Sequence record: NC_027399.1
Direction: 5' to 3' (one strand)
DNA length: 64,000 nt
The position numbers and the translations under genes are program-made. The notes under the pieces were generated by a model. It had not been told where the DNA came from. It saw nothing but the letters and a program-made list of their open reading frames with translations, and did not search any database. Shown here one piece after another: positions 39,585 through 57,894 of this stretch; within the stretch, counting starts at the first letter, position 1, and each line of letters opens with the position of its first letter.

Positions 39585-39678
39585 AATTCACCCGGGTAGA
39601 TTTATCTTTACTGTAAAAGTACTTGCATAATTCTTTCAGTACTGCTATTATATATTCATACCAAACAGGAGAACTACC

Positions 39679-39831
39679 ATGAAATACGCGTACTCTTATT
39701 TTATTGTAAACGGTGAACGTTTGACCATCGGCCAGGCTGCTGTAAAACATGAAATCATTTGCGATGATCTGGCAAAGATGCTACCAGGTGAAACGCAAGA
39801 GTTTTACAAAGGCTTCAGAAAGTCATTGTAA
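39679..39831 (+). CDS. Small early hypothetical protein (not in track)
   Basis: Own promoter, AGGAG SD. Confidence 0.7.
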   Translation: MKYAYSYFIVNGERLTIGQAAVKHEIICDDLAKMLPGETQEFYKGFRKSL

Positions 39832-39913
39832 CACGTTGTGAAGATTGATCCAGTATTAGGGGTAGGAATACCCCTAAAACGTCCTATAACGCATTATAAG
39901 AGGTTTTTATAAT

Positions 39914-40141
39914 ATGGCTATAGAAGTTAACGCTGGGGATATAAAGGCGGCTGTACTGCGTACCCTGAAAGCATACGGCAGAAAGCTGAATGATCGAAAC
40001 GTTCCCTATTATTTCCTTGCTGCTACTCATAAAATGGCAATCGCTGAGGCTCGCGGGTGGCTGAATGATCGCAGTACTGTAAAGAGTACCAGAACAAGAA
40101 ACGCAATTGAGCGATGGATAAAAGAATTAAATCATTTCTAA
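39914..40141 (+). CDS. Hypothetical protein
   Basis: GAGG SD, host-like codons. Confidence 0.75.
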   Translation: MAIEVNAGDIKAAVLRTLKAYGRKLNDRNVPYYFLAATHKMAIAEARGWLNDRSTVKSTRTRNAIERWIKELNHF

Positions 40142-40214
40142 TAGTTCAGTAAAGGGAATCAGTACTGATTCCCTGTTTAGTACTGAAATTATAAGGGGAG
40201 TTAATTAATTCCCC

Positions 40215-40345
40215 TTTACAAATCTTTACAAAAGAATTGTTGACATAGTATCCCAGTACTGGTATTATGTATTCATAGACAGAACAAGTCTTTGGCCCAC
40301 AGGGTGCGGAGGAGTATCTATTAAATGAGAATGATAATCATTTAC
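40215..40345 (+). ncRNA. Gene-less promoter element (CCC..GGGTG family) ending in Fur box
   Basis: CpxR-type box 40215..40229; TTGACA-17-TATTAT; AGAC-AGAACAA-GTCT hairpin; GCCCACAGGGTGCGGAGGAGTATCTAT; Fur box 40327..40345. Confidence 0.65.
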
Positions 40346-40349
40346 AGTA

Positions 40350-40452
40350 CTGAATATATTTCCGCACCCTTTTGGGCTTTTCGATTCCTCTCTACTTGCT
40401 AATAAGTATATCATAATCATTACTGAATGCAATGGTCTTTACAAATCTTTAC
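40350..40452 (-). ncRNA. Convergent gene-less promoter element
   Basis: CpxR-type box 40438..40452; TTGCAT-16-TATACT; GCCCAAAAGGGTGCGGA. Confidence 0.55.
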
Positions 40453-40549
40453 AAAAGAAAATAATTATAAAAAGTACTGAAAAAGTACTTGACGTAATAA
40501 TGTAGTACTGGCATAATGAGTACATACCAAACAGAACGGAGTAACTAAA

Positions 40550-40837
40550 ATGTTTAATGAAAATGATCATATTGTTAAAGAGTTTTCTTTCAGTAAGCCG
40601 ATCCATTTAGAAAACGGTGAAACACTGGACAATAAATTTTATGGTAGTATTATTAAGCGTTATACATCGCGGAGTAGTACTGGAATTTTATGGGAAGTGA
40701 ATAAACAGTACAATGGTAATTCGCTGGTTGTCAATGAGTGGGAAAGTTATGCAGTAGCGGAAATGGATTTTTCTAACTTCATTACTGAATCTTTGAACGA
40801 TGATATCTTTTACAAGTTCACAGCGGAAAGGGTTTAA
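40550..40837 (+). CDS. Early hypothetical protein
   Basis: Promoter plus GGAG SD. Confidence 0.8.
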   Translation: MFNENDHIVKEFSFSKPIHLENGETLDNKFYGSIIKRYTSRSSTGILWEVNKQYNGNSLVVNEWESYAVAEMDFSNFITESLNDDIFYKFTAERV

Positions 40838-40956
40838 AAAGTTTTAAAGAGTACTTGACAACATAATTCAGTACTGTATAATGTATTGCATAGAAAGGAG
40901 ATTCCAGAATAATGGAATCTCCGATAAAACAAACTATCAGTGAAGGAGTAATTGCC

Positions 40957-41568
40957 ATGAATGTTATCGATACCATCTATTCTAAATCTTTTATCGAACT
41001 GAATGAAGAGCAGAAAGAAAAAGCAATCGATGTTATGCGGGAACTGGATCGCCATGATTCAGATCCATTCTGGGCACAATTAATTAATGAAGATAAACAA
41101 GAATTAATGAATAATGAATATGGTTTTACTGATGCTGTAATTCATTATAGCGGCTTTTGCTCACAAGGTGACGGGGCGTCAATTAGTACTGAATCAATCG
41201 ACGCTGAGACGTTTTTACGCAAAATTAAAGCATGGTCGAAATTCCGTGTATTGCATAAACATTTCAATGATGGTACTATTACATTAAAGATCGAACGCAA
41301 CGATCATCGTTATTCGCATGAAAATACTGTTTCTGGTGTGGTGGATTTGGATTATTATACTGAATTCACTGCTAAACAAGAAGAGAAAGCGGAAGAGCTG
41401 GAGACGCTTTTGACTGAAACTATCCGTGATCTTTCACGTCAACATTACCAGGAGTTAAGCGACGAAAACGATTATCAAAATAGTGATGAAGCATTGATTG
41501 AATCGATTAATGCAAATGATTATAATTTCAAAGTTAACAGTACTGGTAACGTATTGGGGTTAGCGTAA
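40957..41568 (+). CDS. Early hypothetical protein
   Basis: AAGGAG SD; YSGFCSQGDGASI motif. Confidence 0.85.
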   Translation: MNVIDTIYSKSFIELNEEQKEKAIDVMRELDRHDSDPFWAQLINEDKQELMNNEYGFTDAVIHYSGFCSQGDGASISTESIDAETFLRKIKAWSKFRVLHKHFNDGTITLKIERNDHRYSHENTVSGVVDLDYYTEFTAKQEEKAEELETLLTETIRDLSRQHYQELSDENDYQNSDEALIESINANDYNFKVNSTGNVLGLA

Positions 41569-41666
41569 TGACTAAATTATATATTCGTTTCTGTTTTGCC
41601 TGGTATTTGTATAATCTACAAAATGGTTATACAACGAAATAATATATCTTTTTACTGATATACTGT

Positions 41667-41698
41667 AAAACGTCCTGTAAACGATTATGGGACGTTTT
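41667..41698. repeat. 32-bp imperfect palindrome, copy at 49893..49924
   Basis: AAAACGTCCTGTAA(A/T)CGATTATGGGACGTTTT; relatives at 39876, 41734, 44918, 54579. Confidence 0.8.
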
Positions 41699-41769
41699 AA
41701 GGAATATTAGTACAATGTTAGTACTGAATGATTTAAACGCCTTACAGTGGCTTACAGGAGATTATATCA

Positions 41770-41982
41770 ATGGCTAAATGTACTATTTGTAATAAAGAAA
41801 TTATTCTTTCCCCTAGTGCAGAGGATCGAGCTAAAAAGTACGGTGGTAAAGCCAGCGACTACACGAAACTTTTTACTACTCATGCGTCTTGTGTTGTTAA
41901 TAAACGTTCAAATGTCAACATTGAATTAATGCGTAAAATCAATAATGATTTTATTAATTCCTGTAAAAAAGTACTTGCATAA
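41770..41982 (+). CDS. Small Zn-binding hypothetical protein
   Basis: CTIC...H..C; AGGAG SD. Confidence 0.8.
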   Translation: MAKCTICNKEIILSPSAEDRAKKYGGKASDYTKLFTTHASCVVNKRSNVNIELMRKINNDFINSCKKVLA

Positions 41983-42061
41983 AGTTTTCAGTACTGGCAT
42001 AATACATCTATACCAAACAAAAAGGGAATCAGTACTGATTCCAAGATAAGGAGTAACTGAA

Positions 42062-42376
42062 ATGAGTACTAAAGAACTGAATGTAACTACCAACACTTAT
42101 AAGACGTTATGCGGTCGGTTGTTACGTGATTATTACACTGTAGAGATTGAAGAACGCGAATTACCCGAAGATAAACACTATTGGGAAAGTGGTGTGAGTC
42201 CTCTGTTACGGGTAACAACGTCTAAGCATGTTTTCTTTACTTCTCGCATTCATGTTAATAAGCGTGTCGAATTGACTTTCTCGTTTAGTGGAAGCTATAA
42301 AGATTATGAGATATTAAATGATCATATCGTTATCAGCAAATTTATTCAAATGTATGGTGCGGATTCTTTACTTTAA
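42062..42376 (+). CDS. Early hypothetical protein
   Basis: Promoter-stem-loop-AAGGAG cassette. Confidence 0.8.
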   Translation: MSTKELNVTTNTYKTLCGRLLRDYYTVEIEERELPEDKHYWESGVSPLLRVTTSKHVFFTSRIHVNKRVELTFSFSGSYKDYEILNDHIVISKFIQMYGADSLL

Positions 42377-42462
42377 GTATTTGACAATTCGATCCAGTAC
42401 TGTATAATGTATTACACCAAAGGGGATACATAGTGTATCCCTGATATAAAGGAGTAGCGACT

Positions 42463-42822
42463 ATGCGAGCTTTTAACGTTTATAAGAATGACAAAAAAAT
42501 TGACGTTGTTTATTATTCCGAAGTAATGACGGCAAAAGAAGTAACCGATTTGCTGAATAGCCGTGGTGAATACAACGGCGAAGTAAAAGCATTTCGGTCA
42601 TTGAATAGTGCGAATATTCGCACAGTACTGAAAAATGCTAAAACTGTTTTATTCAATGATGACGAATATTTTAATAAAGATGTTACGGGTATTAAAAACC
42701 TGGAAGATCTGAAAAGCCTTATTGGTATTAAAGGCAACGTATACAAAGTGGGGGAAGTCGGATCTCGCCATGAATATAAATTAGCCAATAGTGATTATAA
42801 ATTTTCAATCCTGGTAATGTAA
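42463..42822 (+). CDS. Early hypothetical protein
   Basis: Promoter-stem-loop-AAGGAG cassette. Confidence 0.8.
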   Translation: MRAFNVYKNDKKIDVVYYSEVMTAKEVTDLLNSRGEYNGEVKAFRSLNSANIRTVLKNAKTVLFNDDEYFNKDVTGIKNLEDLKSLIGIKGNVYKVGEVGSRHEYKLANSDYKFSILVM

Positions 42823-42823
42823 T

Positions 42824-43027
42824 ATGAAAGTTTATATTTTGGAAGTGGAAGAATGTAATTCATATTCTTACAGTGGTACACTATCACGCGTGGAGGCTGT
42901 ATTTGCAAGCGAGCAAGAAGCCCACGCCGCCGGGATTCAAAAAGTAAAAGAAGGCTATGAAGGTTATAGCGTCGATGCTTATGATATTCAGGGCGATCTT
43001 TCAGTACTGTTAAAGGAATTAAAATAA
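42824..43027 (+). CDS. Early hypothetical protein
   Basis: Coupled to upstream gene. Confidence 0.75.
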   Translation: MKVYILEVEECNSYSYSGTLSRVEAVFASEQEAHAAGIQKVKEGYEGYSVDAYDIQGDLSVLLKELK

Positions 43028-43242
43028 TGGAATATGAATTAATATATCACACTCGGTTATATGTTATTTTCTTTGAAATAACGTTATGGGGAGTAAAGGC
43101 AACGATTTATAATAAAGACGTTGCCGACGATCAAGAATGGATCGTTGTTGCAGAAGATAAAACGCCTCATGATTCGTTAAGTACTGATTTTAAATTATGC
43201 CGTGAATTATTAAAGAGAATAAGAAAAGATAATAATATATAA
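43027..43242 (+). CDS. Early hypothetical protein
   Basis: AAGGA SD, TAATG coupling. Confidence 0.75.
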   Translation: MEYELIYHTRLYVIFFEITLWGVKATIYNKDVADDQEWIVVAEDKTPHDSLSTDFKLCRELLKRIRKDNNI

Positions 43243-43245
43243 AAC

Positions 43246-43272
43246 AAAGGGGATCAATCGATCCCCTTTTTG
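43246..43272. terminator. Bidirectional intrinsic terminator
   Basis: AAAGGGGATC-AATC-GATCCCCTTTT. Confidence 0.85.
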
Positions 43273-43289
43273 TTTCAGTACTGAATTAA

Positions 43290-43400
43290 TAATAGATACA
43301 CTACGGCACCCTATGGGTCAGTGCCTTGTGTCCGGCTTATGTGGTTATTATGCCAGTACTGCGAACATAAGTCAATAGATGATTTGTAAAGAAGTGTAAA
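43290..43400 (-). ncRNA. Gene-less promoter element (CCC..GGGTG family)
   Basis: GTAAA-N5-GTAAA 43386..43400; TTGACT-17-CATAAT; GCC-GGACACAA-GGC; GACCCATAGGGTGCCGTAGTGTATCTAT. Confidence 0.65.
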
Positions 43401-43567
43401 TGCACAGGAAGCGTTTTAAGGCGTTAATCTGTTGCTGGTGGCTGATAGTACAGAGAAGTGTTTTAGATTGATTGTAGGCCGTTGTAGGCGTTTATAGATA
43501 GTAAAGTACTGATAATGTTTAATGATCCTGGTATGTGCAAATTATTTTAATTTTTTTCGTATTGGGT

Positions 43568-43950
43568 ATTGACGGATTATGTCAGTACTGGCATAATGTA
43601 TCACATAGAGCGACGGGCAAGACAAGTAGTCAACCTGTAAGACATACGAAAACCAGGTGACGTTGCACTGATTCAGTACTGAATAATACATAACATCTAA
43701 ATGTTGACAGTACTGAAAAATGTAGTATAATGATTCACAGAAAGAAGCAATCCAGTAAGCATGGATTAGTGATAAACGTAGGCCGGAATCACGAAAAACT
43801 TTCAAGGAAATACCCTTGTATAAAAAGGGAAGCGTTAAGCGTAGAACGTAAACGCGAAAATCCTAGCCTTGAACTGAAAAAGTAAACAAGGCAATTACAG
43901 AAAAAAGATTTAAAAAAGTAGTTGACAAGTACTAACGAGAATGAGATAAT
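43568..43950 (+). promoter_or_regulatory. Tandem strong promoters upstream of the H-NS-like gene
   Basis: TTGACG/CATAAT, TTGCAC/AATAAT, TTGACA/TATAAT, TTGACA/GATAAT, each containing AGTACT. Confidence 0.7.
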
Positions 43951-44003
43951 CTCTCTCGTTGAAACAAACAAACAATCTTAATCAAAACTTAAAGGTGAAT
44001 AAA

Positions 44004-44504
44004 ATGGCTAAACTGAATTCTGTTGTTGTTGCTCTGATCGCTGGTGATATCGCTGCTCTGAATGCTTCTTTCGCGTCGGTATCGATGGAAGATATGAAAA
44101 CTGTTCGTAACAACTTTAACGATTTTTACTCTAAATTCAAAGCTGCAAATGAAGCGGCGGAAGCGGCTGCAAAAGAGCGTAAAGCACAGATCGAAACCGA
44201 AACGAAAGAACTGGTAGACGCCCTGGTAACTGCTGGCCTGGATCTGGAAATGGCCGCCGAAGTCGCCAGCCAGAAAATGGCGGTGAAATATCCCGAACTG
44301 GCTCCGAAGTCGGGAACTGGTAAAACCTGGTCGTTTGAAACCGTATTCGTTAACGTTGACGGTGAAAAACTGGAAATTGGCACCAAAGGCAACAAAGGCA
44401 GTATGAAAGCACTGGCGGCGGCACGCGAAGCAATTGCCGCTGGCAAATACAAAGATCGTGCTGAATGGATCGCCGCTCACGCCTGGACTGAAACCGAAGC
44501 GTAA
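44004..44504 (+). CDS. H-NS/MvaT-like nucleoid-associated protein (putative)
   Basis: Ala/Glu-rich coiled coil ending ALVTAGLD (H-NS MLIADGID); KY...GTGKTWS (H-NS KY...GETKTWTG); GEKLEIGTKGN (MvaT GEVIETKGGN); highly expressed codon bias; AAGGTG SD. Confidence 0.55.
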   Translation: MAKLNSVVVALIAGDIAALNASFASVSMEDMKTVRNNFNDFYSKFKAANEAAEAAAKERKAQIETETKELVDALVTAGLDLEMAAEVASQKMAVKYPELAPKSGTGKTWSFETVFVNVDGEKLEIGTKGNKGSMKALAAAREAIAAGKYKDRAEWIAAHAWTETEA

Positions 44505-44525
44505 TAATTCAGTACTGTAATAATT

Positions 44526-44550
44526 AGCCTCCTGTAATTAGGAGGCTTTT
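44526..44550 (+). terminator. Intrinsic terminator
   Basis: AGCCTCCT-GTAATT-AGGAGGCT-TTT. Confidence 0.85.
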
Positions 44551-44583
44551 TATTTTGTTCAAAAAAATATTTTAATTTATTTT

Positions 44584-44740
44584 TTGAACGGACTTAAAAA
44601 ATCGGATATAATAATAAAGGGTGTTAATTACAGAGACCCCCATAGTGTTCGCTACGCTCACATAATGATCTTACTCGTTGCACTCGTAAGATCATTATCC
44701 AATCGGCCTTCGGCGATTTCTTTTTGATTTCCTACGGAAA
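44584..44740. other. Promoter followed by cluster of GNA-triloop hairpins
   Basis: TTGAAC-17-TATAAT; 13-bp perfect stem ATAATGATCTTAC/GTAAGATCATTAT; minus-strand GCGTAGC, GCCGAAGGC, TCCGTAGGA. Confidence 0.6.
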
Positions 44741-45111
44741 CCAAACGAAACCACCAGCAAAGGCAGATCCCATTATTTGATTTAGTTAGTACTGCAATGA
44801 ATTAGTTTAATCGCACTACAAAGCAATCAATCCCTTTTGTAATAGCTCATAGAACGCAATAAGACGCGTTTAAATGACTTCCCTATGTAATGCCATTCCT
44901 TTTTAATAAGTCCTCTTAAAACGCGTTACAGTTCGTTATACGGCGTTTAATAATACTCATCATTTCTTTTTCAAAAAGTACTTGCATTAATGATCCAGTA
45001 CTGCAATAATGTACTCACTGAAACGCAGTAAGTAAATGCAAATAAGTACTTGACAAAGTGTTGTAGTACTGGCATAATGAATACATCAAAACGATTAAGG
45101 AGAAACACCAA

Positions 45112-45585
45112 ATGTTAAAACTTCATAAAGTACTTGATAACGCAGTTGTAACCGACTTTTTCCTGTCTCTTAACAACGAACCTAAAACAGCAAAAGAAAT
45201 TGTTTTGAGTGGTTACATTGCCAGCAAGTCAGAGATCGCACATTTGGAAAGTGCTTTCAAGTCCGGCGATGCATTGTACCGAAAAATGCAAAATACCATC
45301 GAAGATTTGCAATATATCAATTTACGTGATATTGTAGACAATAAATTGGATATTTCAGAAGAAGCACGCGAAAACCTGGTAAGTAAATTATGTTACCGCT
45401 GCCGAACTGCAAAATGGAATCGCATTCGTAGTATTATTACTTACGATTTAAGTAAGATCGATTCTAAATCAATTCTTGAACGTATGTTATTAAATTTGCA
45501 AAGCAATGAATGGTTTTATACTGCTGCCCAATCTCATAGCGAAGAAATTGCATATATTCGTGATTATGTAATTTACAGCAAGTAA
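45112..45585 (+). CDS. Early hypothetical protein
   Basis: Two tandem promoters, AAGGAG SD. Confidence 0.85.
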   Translation: MLKLHKVLDNAVVTDFFLSLNNEPKTAKEIVLSGYIASKSEIAHLESAFKSGDALYRKMQNTIEDLQYINLRDIVDNKLDISEEARENLVSKLCYRCRTAKWNRIRSIITYDLSKIDSKSILERMLLNLQSNEWFYTAAQSHSEEIAYIRDYVIYSK

Positions 45586-45658
45586 TTAATAATTGATTAG
45601 CCATCATTAAAGCTGGTGGCTAATAGAATATTAATAACCTGTTAGGAGAATAATCTTT

Positions 45659-45928
45659 ATGAAAGGTATTAGTACTTTAATTGATAAAAACACTCATGTA
45701 AGACGTTCAATGATTGCCGTATCACTGGCTAAAGTTGTTGCAAGTGGTTATCTGGTTTTTGTTGTAGATGGTAAATTGCAAGAGCGTTCAATTGCATTTA
45801 GTACTAAAGAAAATTGCCGTTATATTGTATACAAGAAAGAAGCATACAAGATAGATTTACCAGCGAAACCGATCTCAGGCGGTTACAATGTTGAAAGCCT
45901 TTATGAAAGGCCACCGTATACTGCGTAG
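45659..45928 (+). CDS. Early hypothetical protein
   Basis: AGGAG SD. Confidence 0.75.
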   Translation: MKGISTLIDKNTHVRRSMIAVSLAKVVASGYLVFVVDGKLQERSIAFSTKENCRYIVYKKEAYKIDLPAKPISGGYNVESLYERPPYTA

Positions 45929-46182
45929 AATCGATTTTGAGCGGCTTTAATGAAATATAGGGTATCAGTACTGATACCCGTTTAAAACAGTGTAGGAGTG
46001 ATTCTGTGAAGCGTGAACAAGCTTTATTGACGCCTGAAGAGGCAAGACGCTATGAAATGTTTTCAAACCAGGAAACGATCAAAGCGGCACAATATAACCC
46101 GGTTGCTTGTACAGTACAAAGAAAGAATTTTGTACTAAATGAAGTAGAAAGTATTATCAAATCAAATAAGGAGTAAAACGCT

Positions 46183-46455
46183 ATGCAAAATAACCGTCCA
46201 ATGATCCGCAACATGCTTTTCGTATTCCAGAAAAAAGTTAATGTAACTTCGGTAAATGGTGAACGTAAATTAAATGCAGCTTTCGCCAAATATACCCAAA
46301 GTAAAAACATCCATTACTTTTATCTTACTCTGAATGAGTTTAATGATCTGGTAAAAGAAATGTTTGTCAGTACTGAAATTGTTGCACCTGTAAGCACTGA
46401 TATCATTCTAAAAGAATGGGAAAGTTTTTACAAAAGTTCTGTTGTAATCGCTTGA
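46183..46455 (+). CDS. Early hypothetical protein
   Basis: AAGGAG SD. Confidence 0.8.
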   Translation: MQNNRPMIRNMLFVFQKKVNVTSVNGERKLNAAFAKYTQSKNIHYFYLTLNEFNDLVKEMFVSTEIVAPVSTDIILKEWESFYKSSVVIA

Positions 46456-46509
46456 CAACATAATCCAGTACTGGCATAATAACTACATAGACCACAAAGG
46501 AGAAACATA

Positions 46510-46689
46510 ATGGAAACTGTAATTGCTACTACCAAAATCAATGGACTGGATAATGAAGTTTCATTGATCCATGACGGTAACGAATATGTTGTGTCATATG
46601 GTATCTATAAAACCTATCATGACACTATCAATGAAGCTTTTGAGGATTATATGAAAGCAATTGAAATTGCTTATGATGATTATCGTTAA
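46510..46689 (+). CDS. Small early protein (not in track)
   Basis: Promoter plus AAGGAG SD; METVIATTKING... Confidence 0.7.
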   Translation: METVIATTKINGLDNEVSLIHDGNEYVVSYGIYKTYHDTINEAFEDYMKAIEIAYDDYR

Positions 46690-46772
46690 AAGTACTTGCT
46701 TTAATCATTCAGTACTGTATAATGTATTACATCAAAGGGAATGAATGATTCATTCCCACATAACCAGGAGTA

Positions 46773-47132
46773 ATGACTATGTTTGATAAAGTTTTATTTT
46801 CTGATAACACTTCTGAAACCGAGATCCCGGAAGCGGTAAAAGCTTTTGCTCAATTAGTTGCCCAGCGTCAATCTGATAATTACGACGGGCCTTATTCTTT
46901 CCTTACTGAGATTAGTAAAGGCAAAAAGTTTATTAAACTTATTCGCCGCGAGAAGTGGAAAGATAACGGACAATTAACAGGCGGATCGGTATTTACCTTT
47001 ATTGATCCCGATGGTAACATTTACAAATCAGCGACGGCTAAAGCACCAGCTAAAGGTATTCGCGGAAATGTTAACATCAACGGCGGCAATGATGCAATCG
47101 GACGTGATGGTTATATTCGTTACTTTCGTTAA
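46773..47132 (+). CDS. Early hypothetical protein
   Basis: Cassette with AGGAG; FID.DGNIYKSA..KAPAKGIRGN motif. Confidence 0.85.
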   Translation: MTMFDKVLFSDNTSETEIPEAVKAFAQLVAQRQSDNYDGPYSFLTEISKGKKFIKLIRREKWKDNGQLTGGSVFTFIDPDGNIYKSATAKAPAKGIRGNVNINGGNDAIGRDGYIRYFR

Positions 47133-47246: not shown

Positions 47247-47342
47247 ATAATTTGAAGTACTGAAAAATAATTATAAAAAGTACTTGTATTTGTGATTCAG
47301 TACTGCTATTATATATTCATACCAATTAAGGAGATTATCCAA

Positions 47343-49695: not shown

Positions 49696-49725
49696 AAAAA
49701 CACTGGCATATACAGGGGAATAAAA

Positions 49726-50269: not shown

Positions 50270-50367
50270 AAAAGTACTTGCATAATTCTTTCAGTACTGT
50301 ATACTGTACTTATACCAAACAAAAGCAAATGGAATCAGTACTGATTCCCTGTAAAGGAGATAGACCA

Positions 50368-50619: not shown

Positions 50620-50621
50620 AG

Positions 50622-50653
50622 AAAAAGGGGAGACAACAAGTCTCCCTTTTTTT
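50622..50653. terminator. Bidirectional intrinsic terminator
   Basis: AAAAAGGGGAGAC-AACAA-GTCTCCC-TTTTTTT. Confidence 0.85.
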
Positions 50654-50669
50654 GTATTCAGTACTAAAT

Positions 50670-50755
50670 TATATAGATACATTTATGCACCCTGTGGGTT
50701 AGTAGCTTGTTCTGCTTTATGTAGTAATTATATGATAAAGCTGGTGGCTTGTCAA
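50670..50755 (-). ncRNA. Gene-less promoter element (CCC..GGGTG family)
   Basis: TTGACA-17-TATAAT on minus; AGC-AGAACAA-GCT; AACCCACAGGGTGCATAAATGTATCTAT. Confidence 0.7.
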
Positions 50756-50848
50756 CACTTATTTTAAAATAAAAAAAATACTGAATAGTACTTGCAAAAA
50801 GTATTCAGTACTGTATAATGTTTGTATTGAGATTAAGGAGTACTTACT

Positions 50849-51388
50849 ATGTTAATCAAAATGTATCACGGTTCTAATAATTTTGATCACCGCCGGGGAT
50901 ATCTGGGCGGAAAGCCAGGTAATTTTCATATGGGCTTTGGACTCTATCTAACTAACTCTTATCGCTGGGCTGATAATTATGGGCGACGTCATTATGAGTT
51001 AGATTTAGATATTTGTAGTACTGGTGCCGCACATAATGTATGGATTCCTACTAAACACTTTATGGAATTCATAAGAGTATATTGCACCAAAAAGTTTTAT
51101 ACAATGTGCTGTAAAGAATTTAAAGACCGTGAATCGTTGAATGTAGAACGCGTTGAATTGCTTATTATCAATATGGAAAGGCACGTTACGAAAATCGCTA
51201 AACCATTTGCTGAATTCGTCGCTGCCTGGGGTTGCACGCATAGCATTGAAATATCCGGTAACTATGGTGGTGTTTGCGTGCGGCTTTATGATTTCAGTAC
51301 TATAAAGAATTGTATCATAAGCCAGGAAACGCAGGATTTTTATTATCCAGATGAATTGACAAGATATCCTCAAAAAAACTTGTATTAA
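50849..51388 (+). CDS. ADP-ribosyltransferase-fold protein (putative, H-Y class)
   Basis: MYHGS...GFGLYLT.S...A..YG signature. Confidence 0.55.
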   Translation: MLIKMYHGSNNFDHRRGYLGGKPGNFHMGFGLYLTNSYRWADNYGRRHYELDLDICSTGAAHNVWIPTKHFMEFIRVYCTKKFYTMCCKEFKDRESLNVERVELLIINMERHVTKIAKPFAEFVAAWGCTHSIEISGNYGGVCVRLYDFSTIKNCIISQETQDFYYPDELTRYPQKNLY

Positions 51389-51651
51389 TGATTCAGTACT
51401 GATATAATGTATTAAATTAACAGGAGGAATTATCTTAAATGAATAAACGTCAATTGATGATTGATGCATCTCGTTTCCGTTCAAAAGAAGAAAAGAAAAG
51501 TTGCATTAAATGGGTTTTGTCAACTTTCATTATTGGATTACTTATTGTTGCTTTTGTTTATAGTTAGTACTTGACAATATAATCCAGTACTGTATAATGT
51601 TTATCAAAGGGAATGAATTATTCATTCCCGATTAATCAAAGGAGTTTTGCC

Positions 51652-51876
51652 ATGATCTATATTATCAAAGTATCCCCGACCGTAGGAAAATCAGAAGTTG
51701 TAGCTGTTATCACTTCCCTGGAAGCGAAAGATCTTCATACCCCGTTTAATGTATGGGTGGAGGATAATTTCGGACAATTCAGTACTGCTGAATATATCGA
51801 ACAATTCGCCGTCCCGGATACTGGTAAAATCAAAGTGGATCGTATCCTGGATTTTGATAACAGTAATTACTTTTAA
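51652..51876 (+). CDS. Early hypothetical protein
   Basis: Promoter-stem-loop-AAGGAG. Confidence 0.75.
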   Translation: MIYIIKVSPTVGKSEVVAVITSLEAKDLHTPFNVWVEDNFGQFSTAEYIEQFAVPDTGKIKVDRILDFDNSNYF

Positions 51877-52174
51877 AAACGTTTGACAACTGATTTCAGT
51901 ACTGTATAATGTTTATCAAAGGGAATGAATTATTCATTCCCGATTAATCAAAGGGGTTTATCATGAAAGAGTATATCTTTGAAGTAACTTTCACCTTTGG
52001 CCCGCACCAACTGATCCGGTCTTCTGGCTACAACCGCGAACAAGCATTCAGCAACCTTCGCCGTATGTACCCCAATGTCGTGACCTGGGTCAAGTGTGAA
52101 GAAGCATAAAATAATTAGTCAGTACTATTGACAACGCGTGATAGTACTGCTATAATTATTTTAACTTATACGGA

Positions 52175-52426
52175 ATGGAGTTAAAACAAATGTTCAGTGT
52201 CAGCAAACAAGGCGACAAATTTCTGGTTCAATACCATCATTTTGATCTGGTATACACTCAGCCAGATTGTGTATTCAGTACTCAGGAAGGTGCTGAAAAG
52301 CACAAAAAAGCCTTGATCGAAAATAGCAACAGTGGTACATTAGATTTCATCCAACAGTACTGGAATGAATCTAAGCTGGTGGACGGTTATTCCAACACAG
52401 TTTATTATGTAGGTATCACTGATTAA
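52175..52426 (+). CDS. Early hypothetical protein
   Basis: Follows promoter; start may be ATG 52190. Confidence 0.75.
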   Translation: MELKQMFSVSKQGDKFLVQYHHFDLVYTQPDCVFSTQEGAEKHKKALIENSNSGTLDFIQQYWNESKLVDGYSNTVYYVGITD

Positions 52427-52713
52427 TCGGGAGTACTGTTAATGTATATGCCAATTATCATACCGTTAGCAGTACTGTTAATCGCCGCCGTTATCTGCGA
52501 ACAATATCATTTGTTAGGAATGTAAACTATGATTCAATGTGAATTGTCAGTACTGATCACGCTGTTCTATATGTTGGGGCAAAAGAAACAAGATATTTCT
52601 GGTGATAATGCATTATTGTATCAATCATTAGACCAATGGCAACGATCTGAATTAAGCAATGCATGGGCGAAAGGTTACAACGATAGTACTGCAAAATAAT
52701 TTAAAAAAAGGGG

Positions 52714-52801
52714 TTGACTTACGCCAGCCCTTTTGTTATCATTAGTACATAGCAAGAACAATGCTCAAGCCCACAGGGTGCCGAAGTGTATCTATAGTTT
52801 A
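52714..52801 (+). ncRNA. Gene-less promoter element (CCC..GGGTG family)
   Basis: TTGACT-17-TATCAT; AGCA-AGAACAA-TGCT; GCCCACAGGGTGCCGAAGTGTATCTATAGTTTA. Confidence 0.7.
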
Positions 52802-52886
52802 TGTTGGTCTGAATCATTAATTTTTCTTGACAATTGGTTTAGTACTGGATATAATAGCCGCCATTGAATACAGGAGGATTTTAAAA

Positions 52887-53153
52887 ATGGCCTATCATAC
52901 ACCACATAGACACTTCATTGATAAACGCGGTATGGCTTTTAAAGCAATGAGTGACAATCGTAACACACAAATGTACTTTAAAGATATGACATTAGAAGAA
53001 GCAATTGAAGCCGTAAGGAATGATCGTAAGCTTTCCAAGAAAGTTGCATCAGTACTTAATGCTTTTTGGTTTGAACGTACTACCAACAAAGAATACAAAG
53101 AAAAGATGATTGCACTTGGTAAAGTAGTAAGAGAAGAAAAATTATATCTTTAA
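52887..53153 (+). CDS. Early hypothetical protein
   Basis: AGGAGG SD. Confidence 0.8.
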   Translation: MAYHTPHRHFIDKRGMAFKAMSDNRNTQMYFKDMTLEEAIEAVRNDRKLSKKVASVLNAFWFERTTNKEYKEKMIALGKVVREEKLYL

Positions 53154-53435
53154 GTACTTGACTATGTGATTCAGTACTGTATACTGTACTTATACCAAAC
53201 AAAAGCAAAGGGAATCAGTACTGATTCCCTGTAAAGGAGATAGACCAAATGAAACAAGCAAAATTTAATTCAGAAATTAAAGCAGCAAAAGCACACAAAG
53301 TACAGTTAGCAGTACTGGCTATCGTATCAATCTTTTTGCTGTGCAACATCGGCTAAAATAATTATCACAGTACTATTGACAACCAACGATAGTACTGGTA
53401 TAATTAGTTTACCAAATCAAAAAGGAGTAACTAAA

Positions 53436-53711
53436 ATGCGGATTAAACTTACCAGTGATGAAATTCATTCAGTACTTACTACCAATATGCAGGACTGGAA
53501 AAAGTACGCTGATATCGAAGAAGTCCAGGAACTCAATGATGATTTGAGTGTAGATGAAATTATTACTATTTGCTCATCTCAATTCTTTGATGATATCAAT
53601 GATGAAGAGCAAGATGTATTTGATATCATGGAAAAACATTTTATTGCGTATGATGTTTTCCCGTATACTCGCCAGGCTTATATTCTTATTCACAACATTT
53701 ATAACAAATAA
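53436..53711 (+). CDS. Acidic early hypothetical protein
   Basis: AAGGAG SD. Confidence 0.8.
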   Translation: MRIKLTSDEIHSVLTTNMQDWKKYADIEEVQELNDDLSVDEIITICSSQFFDDINDEEQDVFDIMEKHFIAYDVFPYTRQAYILIHNIYNK

Positions 53712-53723
53712 GGAATAATAATC

Positions 53724-54089
53724 ATGGAAAAAGAATTTAAAATCAAATACAATATCAGTACTGATTGCGGTTTCGAAGTACCAGAAGAAGATCAAGAACG
53801 TCTTAATGATGTTATTATGATTGACATTTCAAATAAAATCATTCAAGGCTACCGTGAAGGCGAATTGTGTGAATCGTTGATGGATCAATTCAATGAAGTG
53901 GAAACGTTTTATCGTGGCTGGTGGAGTATCGAAGAAGTTCACAAAGTACACGAATACCGTGTATTCTGGATTAACGGCGTTAATGATATCGAAGATATCA
54001 TTGTAAAAGAAAGTAGTGAATCCGCCGCCATTCAGTACTTTAAAGATCACTACCCCAACAAACGTTATCACCATTTAGAAAAAATTTAA
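53724..54089 (+). CDS. Early hypothetical protein
   Basis: AAGGA SD. Confidence 0.8.
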   Translation: MEKEFKIKYNISTDCGFEVPEEDQERLNDVIMIDISNKIIQGYREGELCESLMDQFNEVETFYRGWWSIEEVHKVHEYRVFWINGVNDIEDIIVKESSESAAIQYFKDHYPNKRYHHLEKI

Positions 54090-54176
54090 AAAGTACTTGA
54101 CACCTAATACCAGTACTGATATATTAATACGCATAGGGGCAAACAACTTGCCCCACTAAACAAAAGGAACTACCAA

Positions 54177-54533
54177 ATGATTACTAAATTCTATTCTTCC
54201 CGCGAAAAAGCTCGGATCGTAGCACGTGAAGAAGGCGAAACCTTCAAAGATATGGGTAAAGATTCCCCTGCTGGTCAACGCTGGGCAGTACTGTTCCGCG
54301 AGGTCAAAGACCTGGTAGAAAACGCTAAAGCGGTTGAAATGAACGTACCCACCAAAGAAGATAAAGATCTGACTGATGCCCTCGCCGCTGCATTCTCCGC
54401 GATGGATAAAGCCGCAGCGGTAGTACTGAAAGTACCGGAATTTGTAACCCGCAAAGTGCATTCAGTACTGCAAAATAAATTCAACGGTAAACAGGTTCAA
54501 GTGTTTACTAAACGTAAAATTCCGGTCATGTAA
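54177..54533 (+). CDS. Highly expressed early hypothetical protein
   Basis: Cassette with AAGGA; strong host-like codon bias; YSSREKAR...GQRWAV. Confidence 0.85.
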   Translation: MITKFYSSREKARIVAREEGETFKDMGKDSPAGQRWAVLFREVKDLVENAKAVEMNVPTKEDKDLTDALAAAFSAMDKAAAVVLKVPEFVTRKVHSVLQNKFNGKQVQVFTKRKIPVM

Positions 54534-54641
54534 GACCTGATTATTACAGTACTAACAAAGGGGCTTCAAAGCCCCTTTAAACGTCCTGTAAGCCATTCTA
54601 AGAGGTTTTACATGAAAAAGGTACAACTACACAAAGGAGTA

Positions 54642-54860
54642 ATGAAAGTTCATTATAATGCCCCGCAACGCATTATAGATAGAGCCATTGAACTAGCCAA
54701 TCAATATCTAGCTGGTGGATTAACTCCCAGGAAGTTAAGCAACGGGAAGTTATATGTAATCAACGTTGATACTAATAATCGTATAGTAATCAAAGGTGAA
54801 AGCATATCACTGTATGAACATCAACAGTATAACAAGAAAGTAAAAAATATTAGTAGATAA
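54642..54860 (+). CDS. Small basic protein, possibly RelE/ParE-like fold
   Basis: AAGGAG SD; RKL...I.V..NNRIV...HQQYN pattern. Confidence 0.45.
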   Translation: MKVHYNAPQRIIDRAIELANQYLAGGLTPRKLSNGKLYVINVDTNNRIVIKGESISLYEHQQYNKKVKNISR

Positions 54861-54939
54861 GTGTTGACAACTGATTTCAGTACTACCATAATGTATACAT
54901 ACAAGGCAATACCGCCTAATAACATAGGAGTAACTGAAA

Positions 54940-55362
54940 ATGAAAAAATCAACTAAAATTGTCTTAGGTGTATTTGTTGTTCCGGCAGTCGCCTTTTTTT
55001 CTTGTGCTATGATTTTTGGTGATGCTTCTCGGGTTGCCGCAAAAATCGAAAAAGAAAAACAAGTCCAGGAACAAGTTAAGAAAGAAGAAAAACCAAATTA
55101 TAACACTGTATGGGAAGCAATTTGCCATACCAGTACAGGTAAACGAATTTCCATCCTTACAGCAATGAATAATGGAAAATCAATCGTCGGAAACGAATAC
55201 ATGGAAGTGACTTCCAGTACTGGTAAAGAATTTGTAATGACGAACTATAATAACAATAACGTTGCAATTGTTACACAGGATTTTAAAGGTAATGCAGTAC
55301 TTGAATATCATATGCAATATGAAGTAATTTTTGCAAAATGCACATTTGAATGGGGTGCATAA
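54940..55362 (+). CDS. Membrane-anchored early hypothetical protein
   Basis: N-terminal hydrophobic helix; AGGAG SD. Confidence 0.8.
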   Translation: MKKSTKIVLGVFVVPAVAFFSCAMIFGDASRVAAKIEKEKQVQEQVKKEEKPNYNTVWEAICHTSTGKRISILTAMNNGKSIVGNEYMEVTSSTGKEFVMTNYNNNNVAIVTQDFKGNAVLEYHMQYEVIFAKCTFEWGA

Positions 55363-55389
55363 AAATAAACATAATAAACAAAAAAGGGG

Positions 55390-55472
55390 TTGACACAGGT
55401 CAGCCCTTTTGCTATTATTAATATCAAGAAAACAAGCTAACCCACAGGGTGCATAAATGTATCTATAGTTTA
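55390..55472 (+). ncRNA. Gene-less promoter element (CCC..GGGTG family)
   Basis: TTGACA-17-TATTAT; AACCCACAGGGTGCATAAATGTATCTATAGTTTA. Confidence 0.7.
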
Positions 55473-55543
55473 TTAAAGAATTTTAGTACTTGACAACGTA
55501 GTACAGCAGTACTAAAATATCTACATACAAAGGAGATTACCAA

Positions 55544-56128
55544 ATGAACAAACATCTTAAAGTACTGAATAAATGTAAATCCAATACCGAAATGTTACTG
55601 TACTGTTACAAAAATTTAATTAAACTCGGGAGAGGTTCATCAAGAACAGTATTTTTGTTAACAAAAAATAAAGTACTGAAAGTTGCTCATAACCATATTG
55701 GCAACCAACAGAATACAGCAGAAATCACTGCATGGTTGTATATTGATTATGACCGCTATTATAATAAACGCTTTTTCGCTAAAGTGTTCCCTGATATGTC
55801 ACATTTCAAAGATGTATACATAGTACAGGAGTACTGCGACAATATCAGTACTAAAGAAGCGAAGCCATACATCGAACATTACTTGACACCTCGCACTATT
55901 GAAAATGAGCGTGCTAAACGCTTCCACACGGCGTTAAGAGATGTAGACAATACCCTTAACTATAAAACGCTGGTGGACTTAAACATGGGCAATATAGGCC
56001 GTTCTGTAAGGGGTGCAATCAAAATCCGTGATTATGGATTATCTGAGCATATTGCTAAACAGTACCGAGAAGCCCGCTTCCAATACCAGCAACTCAAAAG
56101 TATTAGTAACATAAGTATTGATTTATAA
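55544..56128 (+). CDS. Ser/Thr protein kinase-like protein
   Basis: Gly loop LGRGSSRTV, VLKVA (Lys), NTAE (alphaC Glu), IVQEYC hinge, DLNMGN catalytic loop, DYG. Confidence 0.8.
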   Translation: MNKHLKVLNKCKSNTEMLLYCYKNLIKLGRGSSRTVFLLTKNKVLKVAHNHIGNQQNTAEITAWLYIDYDRYYNKRFFAKVFPDMSHFKDVYIVQEYCDNISTKEAKPYIEHYLTPRTIENERAKRFHTALRDVDNTLNYKTLVDLNMGNIGRSVRGAIKIRDYGLSEHIAKQYREARFQYQQLKSISNISIDL

Positions 56129-56193
56129 TTTCAGTACTGCTATAGTACTTTCACAGGGGAGATAATCTCCCCAATCACAGAGGAGATTTTACC

Positions 56194-56556
56194 ATGAGTA
56201 CTAAACCATTCGTTACTACCCGTTCAAATCTGACCGAAATCTATGTACACGGCGGATACGAGGAAACGTATGTCACTGGTATTATGGTAGAATTCCATCA
56301 GGGTTATCGGTTTATGTTGGTAGATTCAGAAATCTATCATACCCAACAAGATAAACATGGTTATGTCAATAAGTACTCCACCGATGAAGTACTGAAACGC
56401 CTGGATAACAAAATTAAACAAATTCAAAAACATCTTGACAACGGCGGAAAACTTAATCATTTACTTTGGGATAGCTTAGATCCCTGCTACGGTTCGGATG
56501 CATATGGTAAAAGCCGTGACACTGCAATGAAAGTACTTAAAGATTATTTCTTTTAA
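56194..56556 (+). CDS. Early hypothetical protein
   Basis: GAGGAG SD. Confidence 0.8.
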   Translation: MSTKPFVTTRSNLTEIYVHGGYEETYVTGIMVEFHQGYRFMLVDSEIYHTQQDKHGYVNKYSTDEVLKRLDNKIKQIQKHLDNGGKLNHLLWDSLDPCYGSDAYGKSRDTAMKVLKDYFF

Positions 56557-56630
56557 GTATTGACAAGCAATTCCAGTACTGGCATAATGTATTTCAAGGA
56601 GGTAATAACACCTCCTACCTTCAAGGAGTA

Positions 56631-56879
56631 GTGACTATGAATACTAAAGAAATGCTTTGTGAGTTCGCCAGTAACAATCTTGGTAACGCCGCTTTCATTG
56701 ATGGTTTTAATTATGTAGCAACTCGTGATCAAGAAGGTAAAGTATTCGTTAAAGATCGTATGGGCTTTTCTATCCAGGTTCAATCTGGTACTGCAAGCCA
56801 TATNGATNGTNNGAANGNNTGGNNNNGNTNCTATCCCCGGNGATGGAACATATCATTTCCGTATCGTAAAATAATTTAA
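56631..56879 (+). CDS. Early hypothetical protein (3' end unreliable, many Ns)
   Basis: AAGGAG SD. Confidence 0.6.
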   Translation: MTMNTKEMLCEFASNNLGNAAFIDGFNYVATRDQEGKVFVKDRMGFSIQVQSGTASHXDXXXXWXXXYPRXWNISFPYRKII

Positions 56880-56973
56880 AAAGTNCTGGACAATACAATC
56901 CAGTACTGTATAATGTTTTGCATACACAAGAGATTCCAGTNCTGGAATCTNTAATNTAAAGGAGAATACCAAA

Positions 56974-57255
56974 ATGATTAACGGCACTCTGATTAANTAT
57001 GCAAAACGCCGCGATGTAGAAATAGAAGTACTGAAAGCAGGCGAAGTTGACGATGACGCTCAGGTATGGTTCTACACCGCAGACAATGACTGTGAACCAG
57101 TACTGATGTACCTGATTAATAATGATGGTTCTCTTACTTATCGTAGCAAACTGATGAAGTCACTGGAAGATATGCCAGCACATATCAATAATAAAGAAGT
57201 ACTGAAACGCGTAATCTGCTACATCTCAGACCAGCACAAAGCGGATATGATGTAA
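56974..57255 (+). CDS. Early hypothetical protein
   Basis: AAGGAG SD. Confidence 0.8.
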   Translation: MINGTLIXYAKRRDVEIEVLKAGEVDDDAQVWFYTADNDCEPVLMYLINNDGSLTYRSKLMKSLEDMPAHINNKEVLKRVICYISDQHKADMM

Positions 57256-57274
57256 TCTTTACAAATATGGGGGG

Positions 57275-57362
57275 TTGACTAATGTCAGCCCTTTTGGTAT
57301 TATATATTCAATCCAGCGAAATGGTCTAACCCTCAAGGGTGCCGAGATGTATCTATAATTTA
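57275..57362 (+). ncRNA. Gene-less promoter element (CCC..GGGTG family)
   Basis: CTTTACAAAT upstream; TTGACT-17-TATTAT; AACCCTCAAGGGTGCCGAGATGTATCTATAATTTA. Confidence 0.7.
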
Positions 57363-57506
57363 ATGATTTGAAGTACTGAAAAATAATTATAAAAAGTACT
57401 TGTATTTGTGATTCAGTACTGCCATAATATATCCATACAAGGGAAACATAGTGTTTCCCGATAATCCACAGCAATAGTGCTGGTGGATGAACCAGGAGTA
57501 ATAACC

Positions 57507-57803
57507 ATGCAAGACAAATCAATTCACGTTCAAGTAGTTTCAAGCCGTGGCTATGACGATGTAGTACTGGATATCATGGTTAAAGATCTGCGGGACTATG
57601 CAATCATTGCACGTCATATCATGGTTAACTCCATTTGTATCAGTACTGGTGCTGATATGGAAGAAAACCGCTTACATATAGAGGAACATCTATACAAAGC
57701 ACGCATGAATGACAGCAGTGTATTCATCATTGAAGGTGCTGAGGGTAAAGAGTATACCGTATACCTTCGCCAGTACCTGGAAGTAGAAAAAGAAGAAGAT
57801 TAA
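57507..57803 (+). CDS. Early hypothetical protein
   Basis: AGGAG SD. Confidence 0.8.
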   Translation: MQDKSIHVQVVSSRGYDDVVLDIMVKDLRDYAIIARHIMVNSICISTGADMEENRLHIEEHLYKARMNDSSVFIIEGAEGKEYTVYLRQYLEVEKEED

Positions 57804-57894
57804 TTTATAAAAAGTACTTGCTTTAATAGTTCAGTACTGTATACTGTTTATCAAGGGGAAGCAATAGTGCCTCCCCACTCATAGGAGATACACC

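Follow-up and report, generated by a model that had tools for sequence, protein, structure and literature searches.

The stretch of DNA considered here, a window of 64,000 nucleotides, is identical to bases 186001–250000 of Klebsiella phage K64-1 (NC_027399.1), a RaK2-like jumbo myovirus of the genus Alcyoneusvirus with a genome of 346.6 kb. Positions below are those of the window unless the record is named. Most of what follows concerns an island of small early genes at 38181–58572 (+ strand, ~20.4 kb) and a palindromic hexamer, AGTACT, which is built into the promoters of that island at fixed places and is also strewn through the rest of the genome. What does the hexamer do at those promoters, and what have they to do with the hundreds of copies that lie elsewhere?

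The island appears to be a genome end. For Muenster, a close relative, PhageTerm predicts a direct terminal repeat at 1–20030; alignment carries Muenster 1 to window position 38181 and Muenster 20030 to ~58572, and annotated terminal repeats of 21–39 kb occupy the corresponding place in vB_Ec-M-J (a phage of E. coli), CBB (Pectobacterium) and PA5oct (Pseudomonas). Because the Muenster repeat maps there and the repeats of relatives correspond to it, we take the island to be the direct terminal repeat of K64-1, present at both ends of the packaged DNA, with boundaries placed by homology to those relatives. The repeat holds 150 AGTACT sites, or 7.4 per kb, as compared with ~2.5 per kb elsewhere.

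Promoters of the terminal repeat

The arrangement AGTACT-N14-AGTACT occurs 19 times in the window and 0.00 times in 100 dinucleotide-preserving shuffles of it; the whole genome adds only one more, at record position 179497. Eighteen of the 19, running from 39618 to 57838 and all on the + strand, follow a single layout, AGTAC-TTGnnn-N9-AGTACT-G-(0 or 1 nt)-TATAAT-like. The layout opens with an A-rich stretch; the hexamer after it lends its last T to a TTGnnn -35 box as the initial T, a variable stretch of nine bases leads to the second AGTACT, and then come a G and the -10 box, with 0 or 1 nt between them. The remaining pair, at 38133–38158, belongs to no promoter; it is part of a group of sites clustered shortly before the physical end of the genome. 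The earlier note had counted at least 18 promoters with this exact 20-bp period, and to those we can add a 19th at 56882–56907 (+; AGTNCTGGACA...CCAGTACTGTATAAT), which the pair search missed solely on account of an N in the record, at 56885; the orthologous promoter of RaK2 has a perfect pair, AGTACTGGACAATACAATCCAGTACT. Could the N bases themselves be a sign of modified AGTACT? We set that idea aside, as the 35 N are scattered or fall in one low-quality patch (56804–56997), whose 22 N hide two AGTACT sites and are not specific to the hexamer.

The paired promoters, all on the + strand, differ in the -35 box that is fused to the upstream hexamer. TTGACA is found at 40850–40875, 45045–45070, 51566–51591 and 54092–54117; TTGCAT at 39618–39643, 44977–45002 and 50273–50298; TTGCTT at 46691–46716, 49275–49300 and 57813–57838; TTGTAT at 47279–47304 and 57395–57420; and TTGACG, TTGATT, TTGCAA and TTGACT at 40484–40509, 48567–48592, 50787–50812 and 53153–53178, respectively. 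The pairs at 41970–41995 and 48253–48278 complete the set, and each is followed by a hairpin in the 5' untranslated region (5'-UTR) with a further AGTACT at its tip (at 42031 in the first case). Several early transcripts have such hairpins (42025–42042, 48300–48323, 50331–50348, 53209–53230 and 56931–56950), perfect palindromes of 18–24 bp centred on AGTACT, so placed that their hexamer forms a third site 36–44 bp, start to start, past the -10-proximal one. Two promoters that the earlier note had placed near 52120 and 53370 do have the upstream AGTACT shifted by 2 bp, giving a 22-bp spacing (52121–52148, sites at 52121 and 52143; 53369–53396, sites at 53369 and 53391; both +), and a 23-bp variant at 55485–55518 (+; sites at 55485 and 55508) has one AGTACT fused to TTGACA and a second that overlaps the -10 box, TAAAAT.

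The pair, though, is a subset of something more general. We scanned for promoters twice, once from the -35 and -10 boxes alone and once anchored on AGTACT plus a -10 box, and the scans show ~34 promoters in the repeat whose -10 box has CAGTACTG immediately before it. The copy fused to the -35 box is present as well in 19 of these, 2 have it shifted by 2 bp, and in the rest it is degenerate or missing; the -10-proximal AGTACT is thus the more widespread of the two. Since the base after it is G in nearly all cases, the final T of the site and that base make up the TG of an extended -10 element. Promoters with only the -10-proximal copy, all on the + strand, lie at 40240–40268 (site at 40255–40260), 42381–42408 (42396, with a degenerate upstream element, AGTATT), 43569–43597 (43584), 46452–46480 (46467), 47516–47544 (47532), 47923–47950 (47938), 49968–49995 (49983), 51380–51408 (51395), 51883–51910 (51898), 52827–52855 (52841), 54864–54892 (54879) and 56560–56588 (56575).

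These are strong promoters of the host type: TTGACA-like and TATAAT-like hexamers stand 16–18 bp apart, all of them upstream of + strand open reading frames (ORFs), and among the + strand sites in 38150–58100 there are 12 perfect 12/12 matches to the sigma-70 consensus, most of the others matching at 10–11 of 12. The palindromes overlap the -35 box, the -10 box or both, as operators do, with the -35-fused site at about -41 to -36 and the -10-proximal site at about -21 to -16; being 20 bp apart, the two face roughly the same side of the helix and could be bound cooperatively. The earlier note had cautioned that this spacing is partly forced by promoter geometry, and rightly so, because anchoring both hexamers to their boxes already fixes the spacing at 20 bp. 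It is the anchoring that lies beyond chance: the probability that 19 of 34 promoters would have AGTACT at one fixed offset is ~5e-32, even at the density of the repeat.

Outside the repeat, none of ~35 sigma-70-like candidates in the window carries the pair, which bears out, and sharpens, the earlier remark that such promoters mostly lack it, and a single one (29899–29926, +) has a -10-proximal AGTACT at the usual place. The perfect TTGACA-N16-18-TATAAT promoters outside the repeat (73, 8718, 26906 and 34771) have no AGTACT. As these consensus promoters, and others in the non-coding leader of the repeat, do without the hexamer, it is not needed for promoter activity in K64-1. Phased AGTACT marks one class of promoter, that of the terminal repeat. 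Within the class, weaker -35 boxes tend to go with the -35-fused site (12 of 19 promoters, vs 2 of 14 without it; p = 0.011).

Comparison of the paired promoters of K64-1 with those of RaK2 and Muenster shows how well the sites have been kept. The two hexamers have 1 change in 432 positions and the rest of the -35 box has 0 in 180, as against 21 in 324 for the nine-base stretch between the -35 box and the second hexamer and 11 in 324 for the -10 region (hexamers vs spacer, Fisher p = 1.7e-7). By this comparison both hexamers are under purifying selection as strong as that on the -35 hexamer, and they are conserved beyond what a promoter needs, given the contrast with the spacer and the promoters elsewhere that have no site.

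It is at the terminal-repeat ends, too, that the layout gathers in Muenster, RaK2, vB_Ec-M-J, Munch (a phage of Salmonella), Hallingskeid (Erwinia), CBB and GAP32 (Cronobacter), and at least four lineages besides that of K64-1 have it in their repeats. Matches in the repeat-end bins number 30 of the 38 on that strand in K64-1, 34 of 44 in Muenster and 10–12 of 19 in Munch; Hallingskeid has 26 of its 37 in the first 20 kb, and vB_Ec-M-J has 18 per repeat copy, with 51 on that strand. Pairs are present in the repeats of CBB and GAP32, too. The share of promoter candidates that have the hexamer is smaller in these other lineages than in Alcyoneusvirus, and the repeat promoters of PA5oct have no bracketing palindrome. 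In IMG/VR, the contigs with more than one match to AGTACTTG-N12-AGTACTG are all jumbo contigs of 350–370 kb, apart from one of 109 kb, whose k-mer signature is that of the jumbo genomes.

AGTACT in the genome and in the clade

If the hexamer were confined to these promoters, the story would be a simple one. It is not. The window has 293 copies where 15 +/- 4 are expected, and the K64-1 genome has 940, mostly inside genes, which makes AGTACT its commonest hexamer, at 11.9 times the first-order Markov expectation. The extended consensus, TTCAGTACTGAA, is a 12-bp palindrome with mirror-symmetric flanks: C is enriched at -1 and G at +1, and G is depleted at -1. Symmetric flanks argue for recognition of the duplex by a symmetric dimer and against a signal in RNA or in the code.

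Crude ORF calls take in about 78% of the copies, which appear there mainly as AGT-ACT (Ser-Thr) or xxA-GTA-CTx (Val-Leu), and the coding sequence has paid for them. It contains 695 copies, as compared with 217 +/- 14 after synonymous codon shuffling; Ser-Thr is written as AGTACT 384 times, when codon usage predicts 121; and the dipeptides themselves are in excess (Ser-Thr, 797 vs 450; Val-Leu, 744 vs 473). With both codon choice and dipeptides skewed, selection on AGTACT is strong enough to shape protein sequence. Codon or amino acid preference as the source of the excess was tried and rejected in view of the synonymous shuffles, the symmetric flanks and a non-coding DNA that is richer still. 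Repair or mutation bias fared no better, as the one-mismatch neighbours of AGTACT are mildly enriched (1.3–3.9 times) and none is drained enough for conversion; the exception among them is AGGACT/AGTCCT, at ~0.5–0.7 times expectation.

Away from the repeat, the copies follow no evident plan. Gaps between them are Poisson-like (coefficient of variation ~1), 20 bp is the sole preferred distance, density is flat over gene starts, ends and bodies, and every gene of at least 1.5 kb has a copy; genome wide, we found no association with gene starts or stops, with the late (TATAAATA) or TGAAACG motifs, or with any regular spacing. Between K64-1 and vB_Ec-M-J, 32% of AGTACT sites are kept in place, vs 17% of all hexamers, from which it would follow that density is maintained while positions turn over. 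In its strong over-representation (~10-fold), its presence in coding DNA at a cost in codon choice and its steady density, AGTACT resembles Chi, DNA uptake sequences and the FtsK-orienting polar sequences (KOPS). Those are asymmetric, strand-skewed and have known readers, whereas AGTACT is a perfect palindrome—which allows no skew of strand or orientation—in a virus, it is phased at promoters, and no reader of it, of the RecBCD/AddAB type or any other, is known.

AGTACT is also the top hexamer in seven enterobacterial RaK2-like phages: K64-1 with its 940 copies, RaK2 (937), Muenster (949), vB_Ec-M-J (1125), Munch (850), Hallingskeid (1313) and CBB (1235). In K64-1, vB_Ec-M-J, Munch, Hallingskeid and CBB, the five whose first-order Markov expectation was computed, the count is 8.7 to 11.9 times that expectation, and uncultivated jumbo contigs, represented by loci from several, have 5.3 copies per kb. 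There is no enrichment in the related PA5oct (15 copies vs 89 expected) or Agrobacterium phage Atu_ph07 (21 vs 53), nor in T4 (29 vs 32) or T5 (23 vs 35), which have hosts in common with the clade. The flanks vary by lineage, with CAGTACTG preferred in K64-1, vB_Ec-M-J and Hallingskeid and AAGTACTT in Munch and CBB. The host of Hallingskeid is an Erwinia, and Erwinia is also listed among the hosts of CBB (PMC5259590); judged by these sequences, then, flank preference tracks the phage lineage and not the host. Because the flanks follow lineage and the T4 and T5 controls are unenriched, a reader encoded by the phage is favored over a host protein.

Other features of the window

The clustered sites at the left boundary of the repeat (38083, 38133, 38153 and 38163, within 38083–38180) end in the 13-mer CAGTACTGATATGCCACTA directly before the physical left end, and the same 13-mer precedes the right repeat of vB_Ec-M-J. 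The predicted genome end falls directly after CAGTACTGATATG(C/T)CACTA, a sequence that opens with an AGTACT site, is conserved between genera and is located at 38162–38180 in the window and at 357029–357048 in the vB_Ec-M-J record; a dense run of AGTACT (38083–38168) stands before it. This sequence may be part of the recognition region of the terminase.

The non-coding leader of the repeat (38181–39617, +) has 14 AGTACT sites, Fur-box-like repeats and two sigma-70 consensus promoters (38426–38454 and 39378–39406) that are free of AGTACT and have no ORF behind them. Such promoters may drive small RNAs; Rfam and tRNA scans of the repeat gave no matches. Four Fur-box-like 19-mers (at most 3 mismatches to GATAATGATAATCATTATC; 0.12 expected) lie in 38949–40345, across the leader and the first genes, as parts of 58-nt repeats, and AGTACT comes directly after three of them. 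The cluster could titrate host Fur or make leader transcription sensitive to iron.

A second kind of promoter element matches the promoter early stem-loops (PeSLs) of T4-type phages, repeated early-promoter cassettes with stem-loops beside small variable ORFs (PMC2839356, PMC4122927). It is a composite of terminator and promoter, a hairpin, AAAGGGTTGAC-loop-GTCAGCCCTTTT, whose stem contains the -35 box and which is followed by a T-run and a TATTAT -10 box; the 15 in the window are at 15932, 18104, 18568, 21127, 23631, 25287, 26353, 28700, 29359, 30705, 36735, 47155, 48983, 55388 and 57273. The AGTACT promoters share with PeSLs their 5'-UTR hairpins and their place beside small ORFs. They differ in being a separate class confined to the repeat, and PeSLs have no bracketing palindrome.

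Among the genes of the repeat are an annotated YeeU-like antitoxin (40912–41568), a protein with a ParE-like toxin domain (54612–54860; Pfam E = 2.4e-10) and an annotated protein kinase (55544–56128), the last two conserved in all lineages compared. Outside it, 4474–5373 (+) encodes a sigma-70-family factor (Pfam regions 2 and 3; PHROG "RNA polymerase sigma factor") that belongs to the core gene set of the enterobacterial clade; tblastn gave no match to it in PA5oct or Atu_ph07.

Finally, there is a word that these phages avoid altogether. GCGC is absent from all seven enterobacterial genomes (346–378 kb; 0 vs 120–350 expected), including the window (0 vs 34 +/- 6 in shuffles). It is also missing from ~100 kb of sequence from uncultivated jumbo relatives, and it is at expectation in PA5oct, Atu_ph07, T4 and T5. 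CAGCTG and AGGCCT are at zero in K64-1 and Hallingskeid (18–57 expected), CCATGG is at zero in Hallingskeid, and AGCGCT is at zero because GCGC is absent; palindromes are thus avoided in the classical manner beside a 12-fold excess of AGTACT. From the absence of GCGC we suspect a nuclease with that specificity, perhaps encoded by the phage itself, that is directed at host DNA. At 137–721 (+) lies a gene for a protein of 194 amino acids, at least 51% identical within the clade and absent from PA5oct and Atu_ph07, with an invariant D98...E107-V-K109 motif. Its structural model (mean predicted local distance difference test score [pLDDT] 88.7) finds its best, weak, matches in PDB among PD-(D/E)XK nucleases and restriction enzymes (D212, NhoI, Eco15I and Hjc; E = 1e-3 to 0.05). 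Our guess is that this protein and a clade-specific HNH protein (K64-1 record 5709–6293) are candidate nucleases behind the purge.

A proposed reader for AGTACT

How might one word serve both one class of promoters and a whole genome? The reading we favor, tentatively and with a little more doubt than belief, is that AGTACT is read by a clade-specific, probably phage-encoded dimer that occludes the repeat promoters and thereby shuts off the first wave of transcription. AGTACT would be the core recognition site of this symmetric, double-stranded DNA-binding protein of the enterobacterial RaK2-like phages. As the reader accumulated, it would fill the phased, possibly cooperative sites of the repeat promoters and block RNA polymerase at the -35 and -10 boxes; because the sites cover -41 to -36 and -21 to -16, it should clash with sigma region 4 at the one and with recognition of the extended -10 element at the other. 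In this reading the single -10-proximal site is the core element. Consensus promoters elsewhere, having no sites, would escape. The ~900 other copies, spread evenly through genes, would be put by the same reader to another use across the genome, for example to mark, coat or protect the DNA of the phage. Since the operator word is common to the whole genome, the reader would have to be abundant or favor paired sites strongly, and since any reader of AGTACT would bind genome wide, only the phasing relative to the -35 and -10 boxes can be specific to the class. We infer the binding, the repression and the reader itself from the sequence facts set out above. The proposal of the earlier note, a class-specific operator, thus survives in part: a promoter class is marked, its boxes are overlapped and its sites are under purifying selection, but the word itself belongs to the genome at large and lies mostly inside genes.

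Early genes in terminal repeats have been met before. Pre-early shut-off in T5 depends on A1. Like K64-1, T5 keeps a block of small host-takeover genes in a long direct terminal repeat, with strong promoters for host sigma-70, and from the annotation of its record one expects that class to be switched on before the others and silenced afterwards, as we would expect of the repeat genes here. The earlier note drew this comparison from the promoters, and it proved more apt than its author could know, because the island coincides with a direct terminal repeat (predicted by PhageTerm in Muenster and annotated in other relatives); by analogy, the location fits a first-expressed class in need of a dedicated shut-off. 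For K64-1, the likeness is that of a block placed within the repeat by homology; two-step transfer and A1 are features of T5, which differs in having no AGTACT enrichment and no such pairs, and we found no proteins shared between the two.

SPO1 of Bacillus has a host-takeover module in its terminal redundancy, with many strong early promoters before small genes, and its TF1 protein binds throughout the genome, with preferred sites that overlap early promoters. Both the promoters and the genome-wide DNA binder are thus reminiscent of what we propose. However, TF1 is of the HU type and recognizes hydroxymethyluracil DNA and not a hexamer, and the K64-1 genome shows no sign of base replacement. 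The operators of lambda are like the K64-1 sites in being palindromes over promoter boxes, two of them about two helical turns apart, with cooperativity possible; but lambdoid operators are 15–17 bp long, few and absent from coding DNA, whereas the K64-1 core is 6–8 bp and the commonest word of its genome. It is the classical operator's confinement to regulated promoters that AGTACT, at 940 copies, lacks. No Cro/CI-type helix-turn-helix gene was detectable in the four genomes searched.

Several points weigh against the dimeric repressor, one being that we found no protein for the part. The TetR_N, HTH_3, PrlF and AbrB/MazE families gave no convincing match in the four genomes searched. Searches of Pfam, PHROGs, Atlas and folds produced no candidate cognate reader, and the HTH_37 regulator of CBB has no K64-1 homologue. 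The most conserved basic protein of the repeat (45659–45928), 74% identical in the E. coli phage and present in all five lineages compared, has a beta-rich model (mean pLDDT 75.7) with no significant fold match in PDB. Moreover, ~900 extra sites per genome copy would titrate a repressor during replication, and this could be avoided only if the repressor were very abundant or bound paired sites much more tightly. The T and following G of the -10-proximal site are the TG of the extended -10 element, so RNA polymerase explains part of the conservation; and the weaker -35 boxes that go with the -35-fused site resemble those of promoters helped by a compensating positive element, although several of the promoters concerned are near-duplicates and so not independent.

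Among the candidates tried and dropped were the clade-specific small basic proteins, which turned out to match HNH, lysozyme, NUDIX, KTSC or nothing. The protein at 44004–44504 (+), gp430, which the earlier note had put forward for binding tests, is H-NS-like (Pfam Histone_HNS_N, E = 4e-6) and conserved in the repeats of vB_Ec-M-J and Hallingskeid, and it has no detectable homologue in Munch; the H-NS family is not known to read a hexamer, and we do not favor gp430 as the reader. It could be an H-NS mimic or antagonist suited to an AT-rich invader.

Suppose, instead, that the sites help transcription. A factor present at time zero, host-encoded or injected, or a contact of RNA polymerase itself, would then boost or license the repeat genes. 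That non-consensus -35 boxes are commoner where the -35-fused site is present is what one sees at activator-dependent promoters, and the -10-proximal site does provide the TG of an extended -10. Yet most of these promoters, near-consensus and with an extended -10 already, should need no help, equally good promoters outside the repeat have no sites, the duplicated cassettes inflate the -35 correlation, and we know of no RNA polymerase contact that reads AGTACT. On balance, we think a positive element unlikely, if the most serious of the alternatives.

Palindromes scattered through a genome, with same-face pairs at regulated promoters, also bring to mind GATC and SeqA, which acts on hemimethylated GATC pairs. 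AGTACT could be a modified sequence, and a SeqA-like reader could sequester the paired sites after replication and so couple shut-off to it. RaK2 DNA has, indeed, been reported to be methylated and resistant to many restriction enzymes, and the phage encodes two methyltransferases (PMC3622015). Of the three methyltransferase families that we tested, however, not one turned up in every one of the five AGTACT-rich genomes searched: N6_N4_Mtase was found in CBB only, D12 in none and C5 in four of the five, not in Munch. (The C5 cytosine methyltransferase, of ~300 amino acids, lies at 166682–167551 of the K64-1 record and is found also in vB_Ec-M-J, Hallingskeid and CBB.) A modification target, moreover, has no obvious need of 12-fold enrichment, and because other palindromes have been purged (GCGC, CAGCTG and AGGCCT are at zero), the genomes do not look broadly protected. 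All told, we would be surprised if modification sensing proved to be the answer.

More surprising still would be a hexamer that simply hitch-hikes. Mobile promoter and stem-loop cassettes might carry a generally favored AGTACT about with no function at the promoter, and composite promoter-terminator cassettes are, after all, known in T4-type phages (PMC4122927). Several cassettes in K64-1 are near-identical (39618 and 50273; 47279 and 57395), and 5'-UTR hairpins come after the promoters. Within cassettes, though, the spacer has diverged and the two hexamers have not; the promoter copies, with their single change in 432 positions, are far better kept than the genome-wide copies (93.6% of hexamers intact, vs 89–91% for all hexamers); and the positions recur in lineages whose cassette sequences differ. 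Passive carriage is improbable.

Least credible of all, to the point that we hardly entertain it, is that the sites mimic GTGAGTACTCAC, the SlmA-binding sequence (SBS), so that phage DNA would activate or titrate the host's nucleoid-occlusion factor and block division: TTCAGTACTGAA is, like it, a 12-bp palindrome scattered in a genome and apparently read by a dimer, the AGTACT core is common to both (PMC3020112) and only phages of Enterobacterales show the enrichment, which the Pseudomonas and Agrobacterium relatives lack, but the flanks differ, and SlmA strongly prefers G1 and T2 and requires a purine at position 3, ahead of A4 and G5, in each half-site (PMC3020112), whereas the phage consensus, T/A-T-C-A-G-T, has C there and so fails the half-site requirement, G, the SBS base at position 3, is the least frequent there (5–12% in six genomes), full SBS-compatible 12-mers number 0–2 per genome, flank preference differs between phages with a common host genus, and T4 and T5 are unenriched.

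The dimeric reader can also be placed within a larger scheme, one that we offer as a speculation and ourselves think unlikely. GCGC purged and AGTACT packed might together form a two-part code of self, both parts read by phage machinery, with the AGTACT reader reused at the repeat promoters. A clade-specific nuclease would, for example, destroy host DNA bearing GCGC, and the AGTACT reader would mark, protect or license the DNA of the phage.

How much of this is new? A published account of CBB and GAP32 (PMC5259590) describes clusters of RpoD-like early promoters before small ORFs beside the terminal repeat, and AGTACT elements are not mentioned in its CBB promoter tables, main text or supplement. 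The RaK2 paper has no promoter analysis, and the motif is not described in its main text (PMC3622015); our literature search found no paper that links AGTACT or GCGC with these phages. Control of early promoters in a terminal repeat is of a known kind, and it is the genome-wide signature attached to it that we have not found described.

The repeat promoters are compact, very strong and possibly switchable parts, and if their AGTACT sites are operators, they offer a handle on the timing of the first genes in a large group of jumbo phages of Klebsiella, E. coli and Salmonella that are used therapeutically. Of greater weight, perhaps, is the more general finding that the word used most often by a virus of 350 kb is a palindromic hexamer, and one that distorts the proteins of the virus. 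AGTACT is enriched in every enterobacterial lineage of the group tested and not in PA5oct, Atu_ph07, T4 or T5, which therefore implies an abundant and as yet undescribed reader of phage DNA, specific for this sequence.

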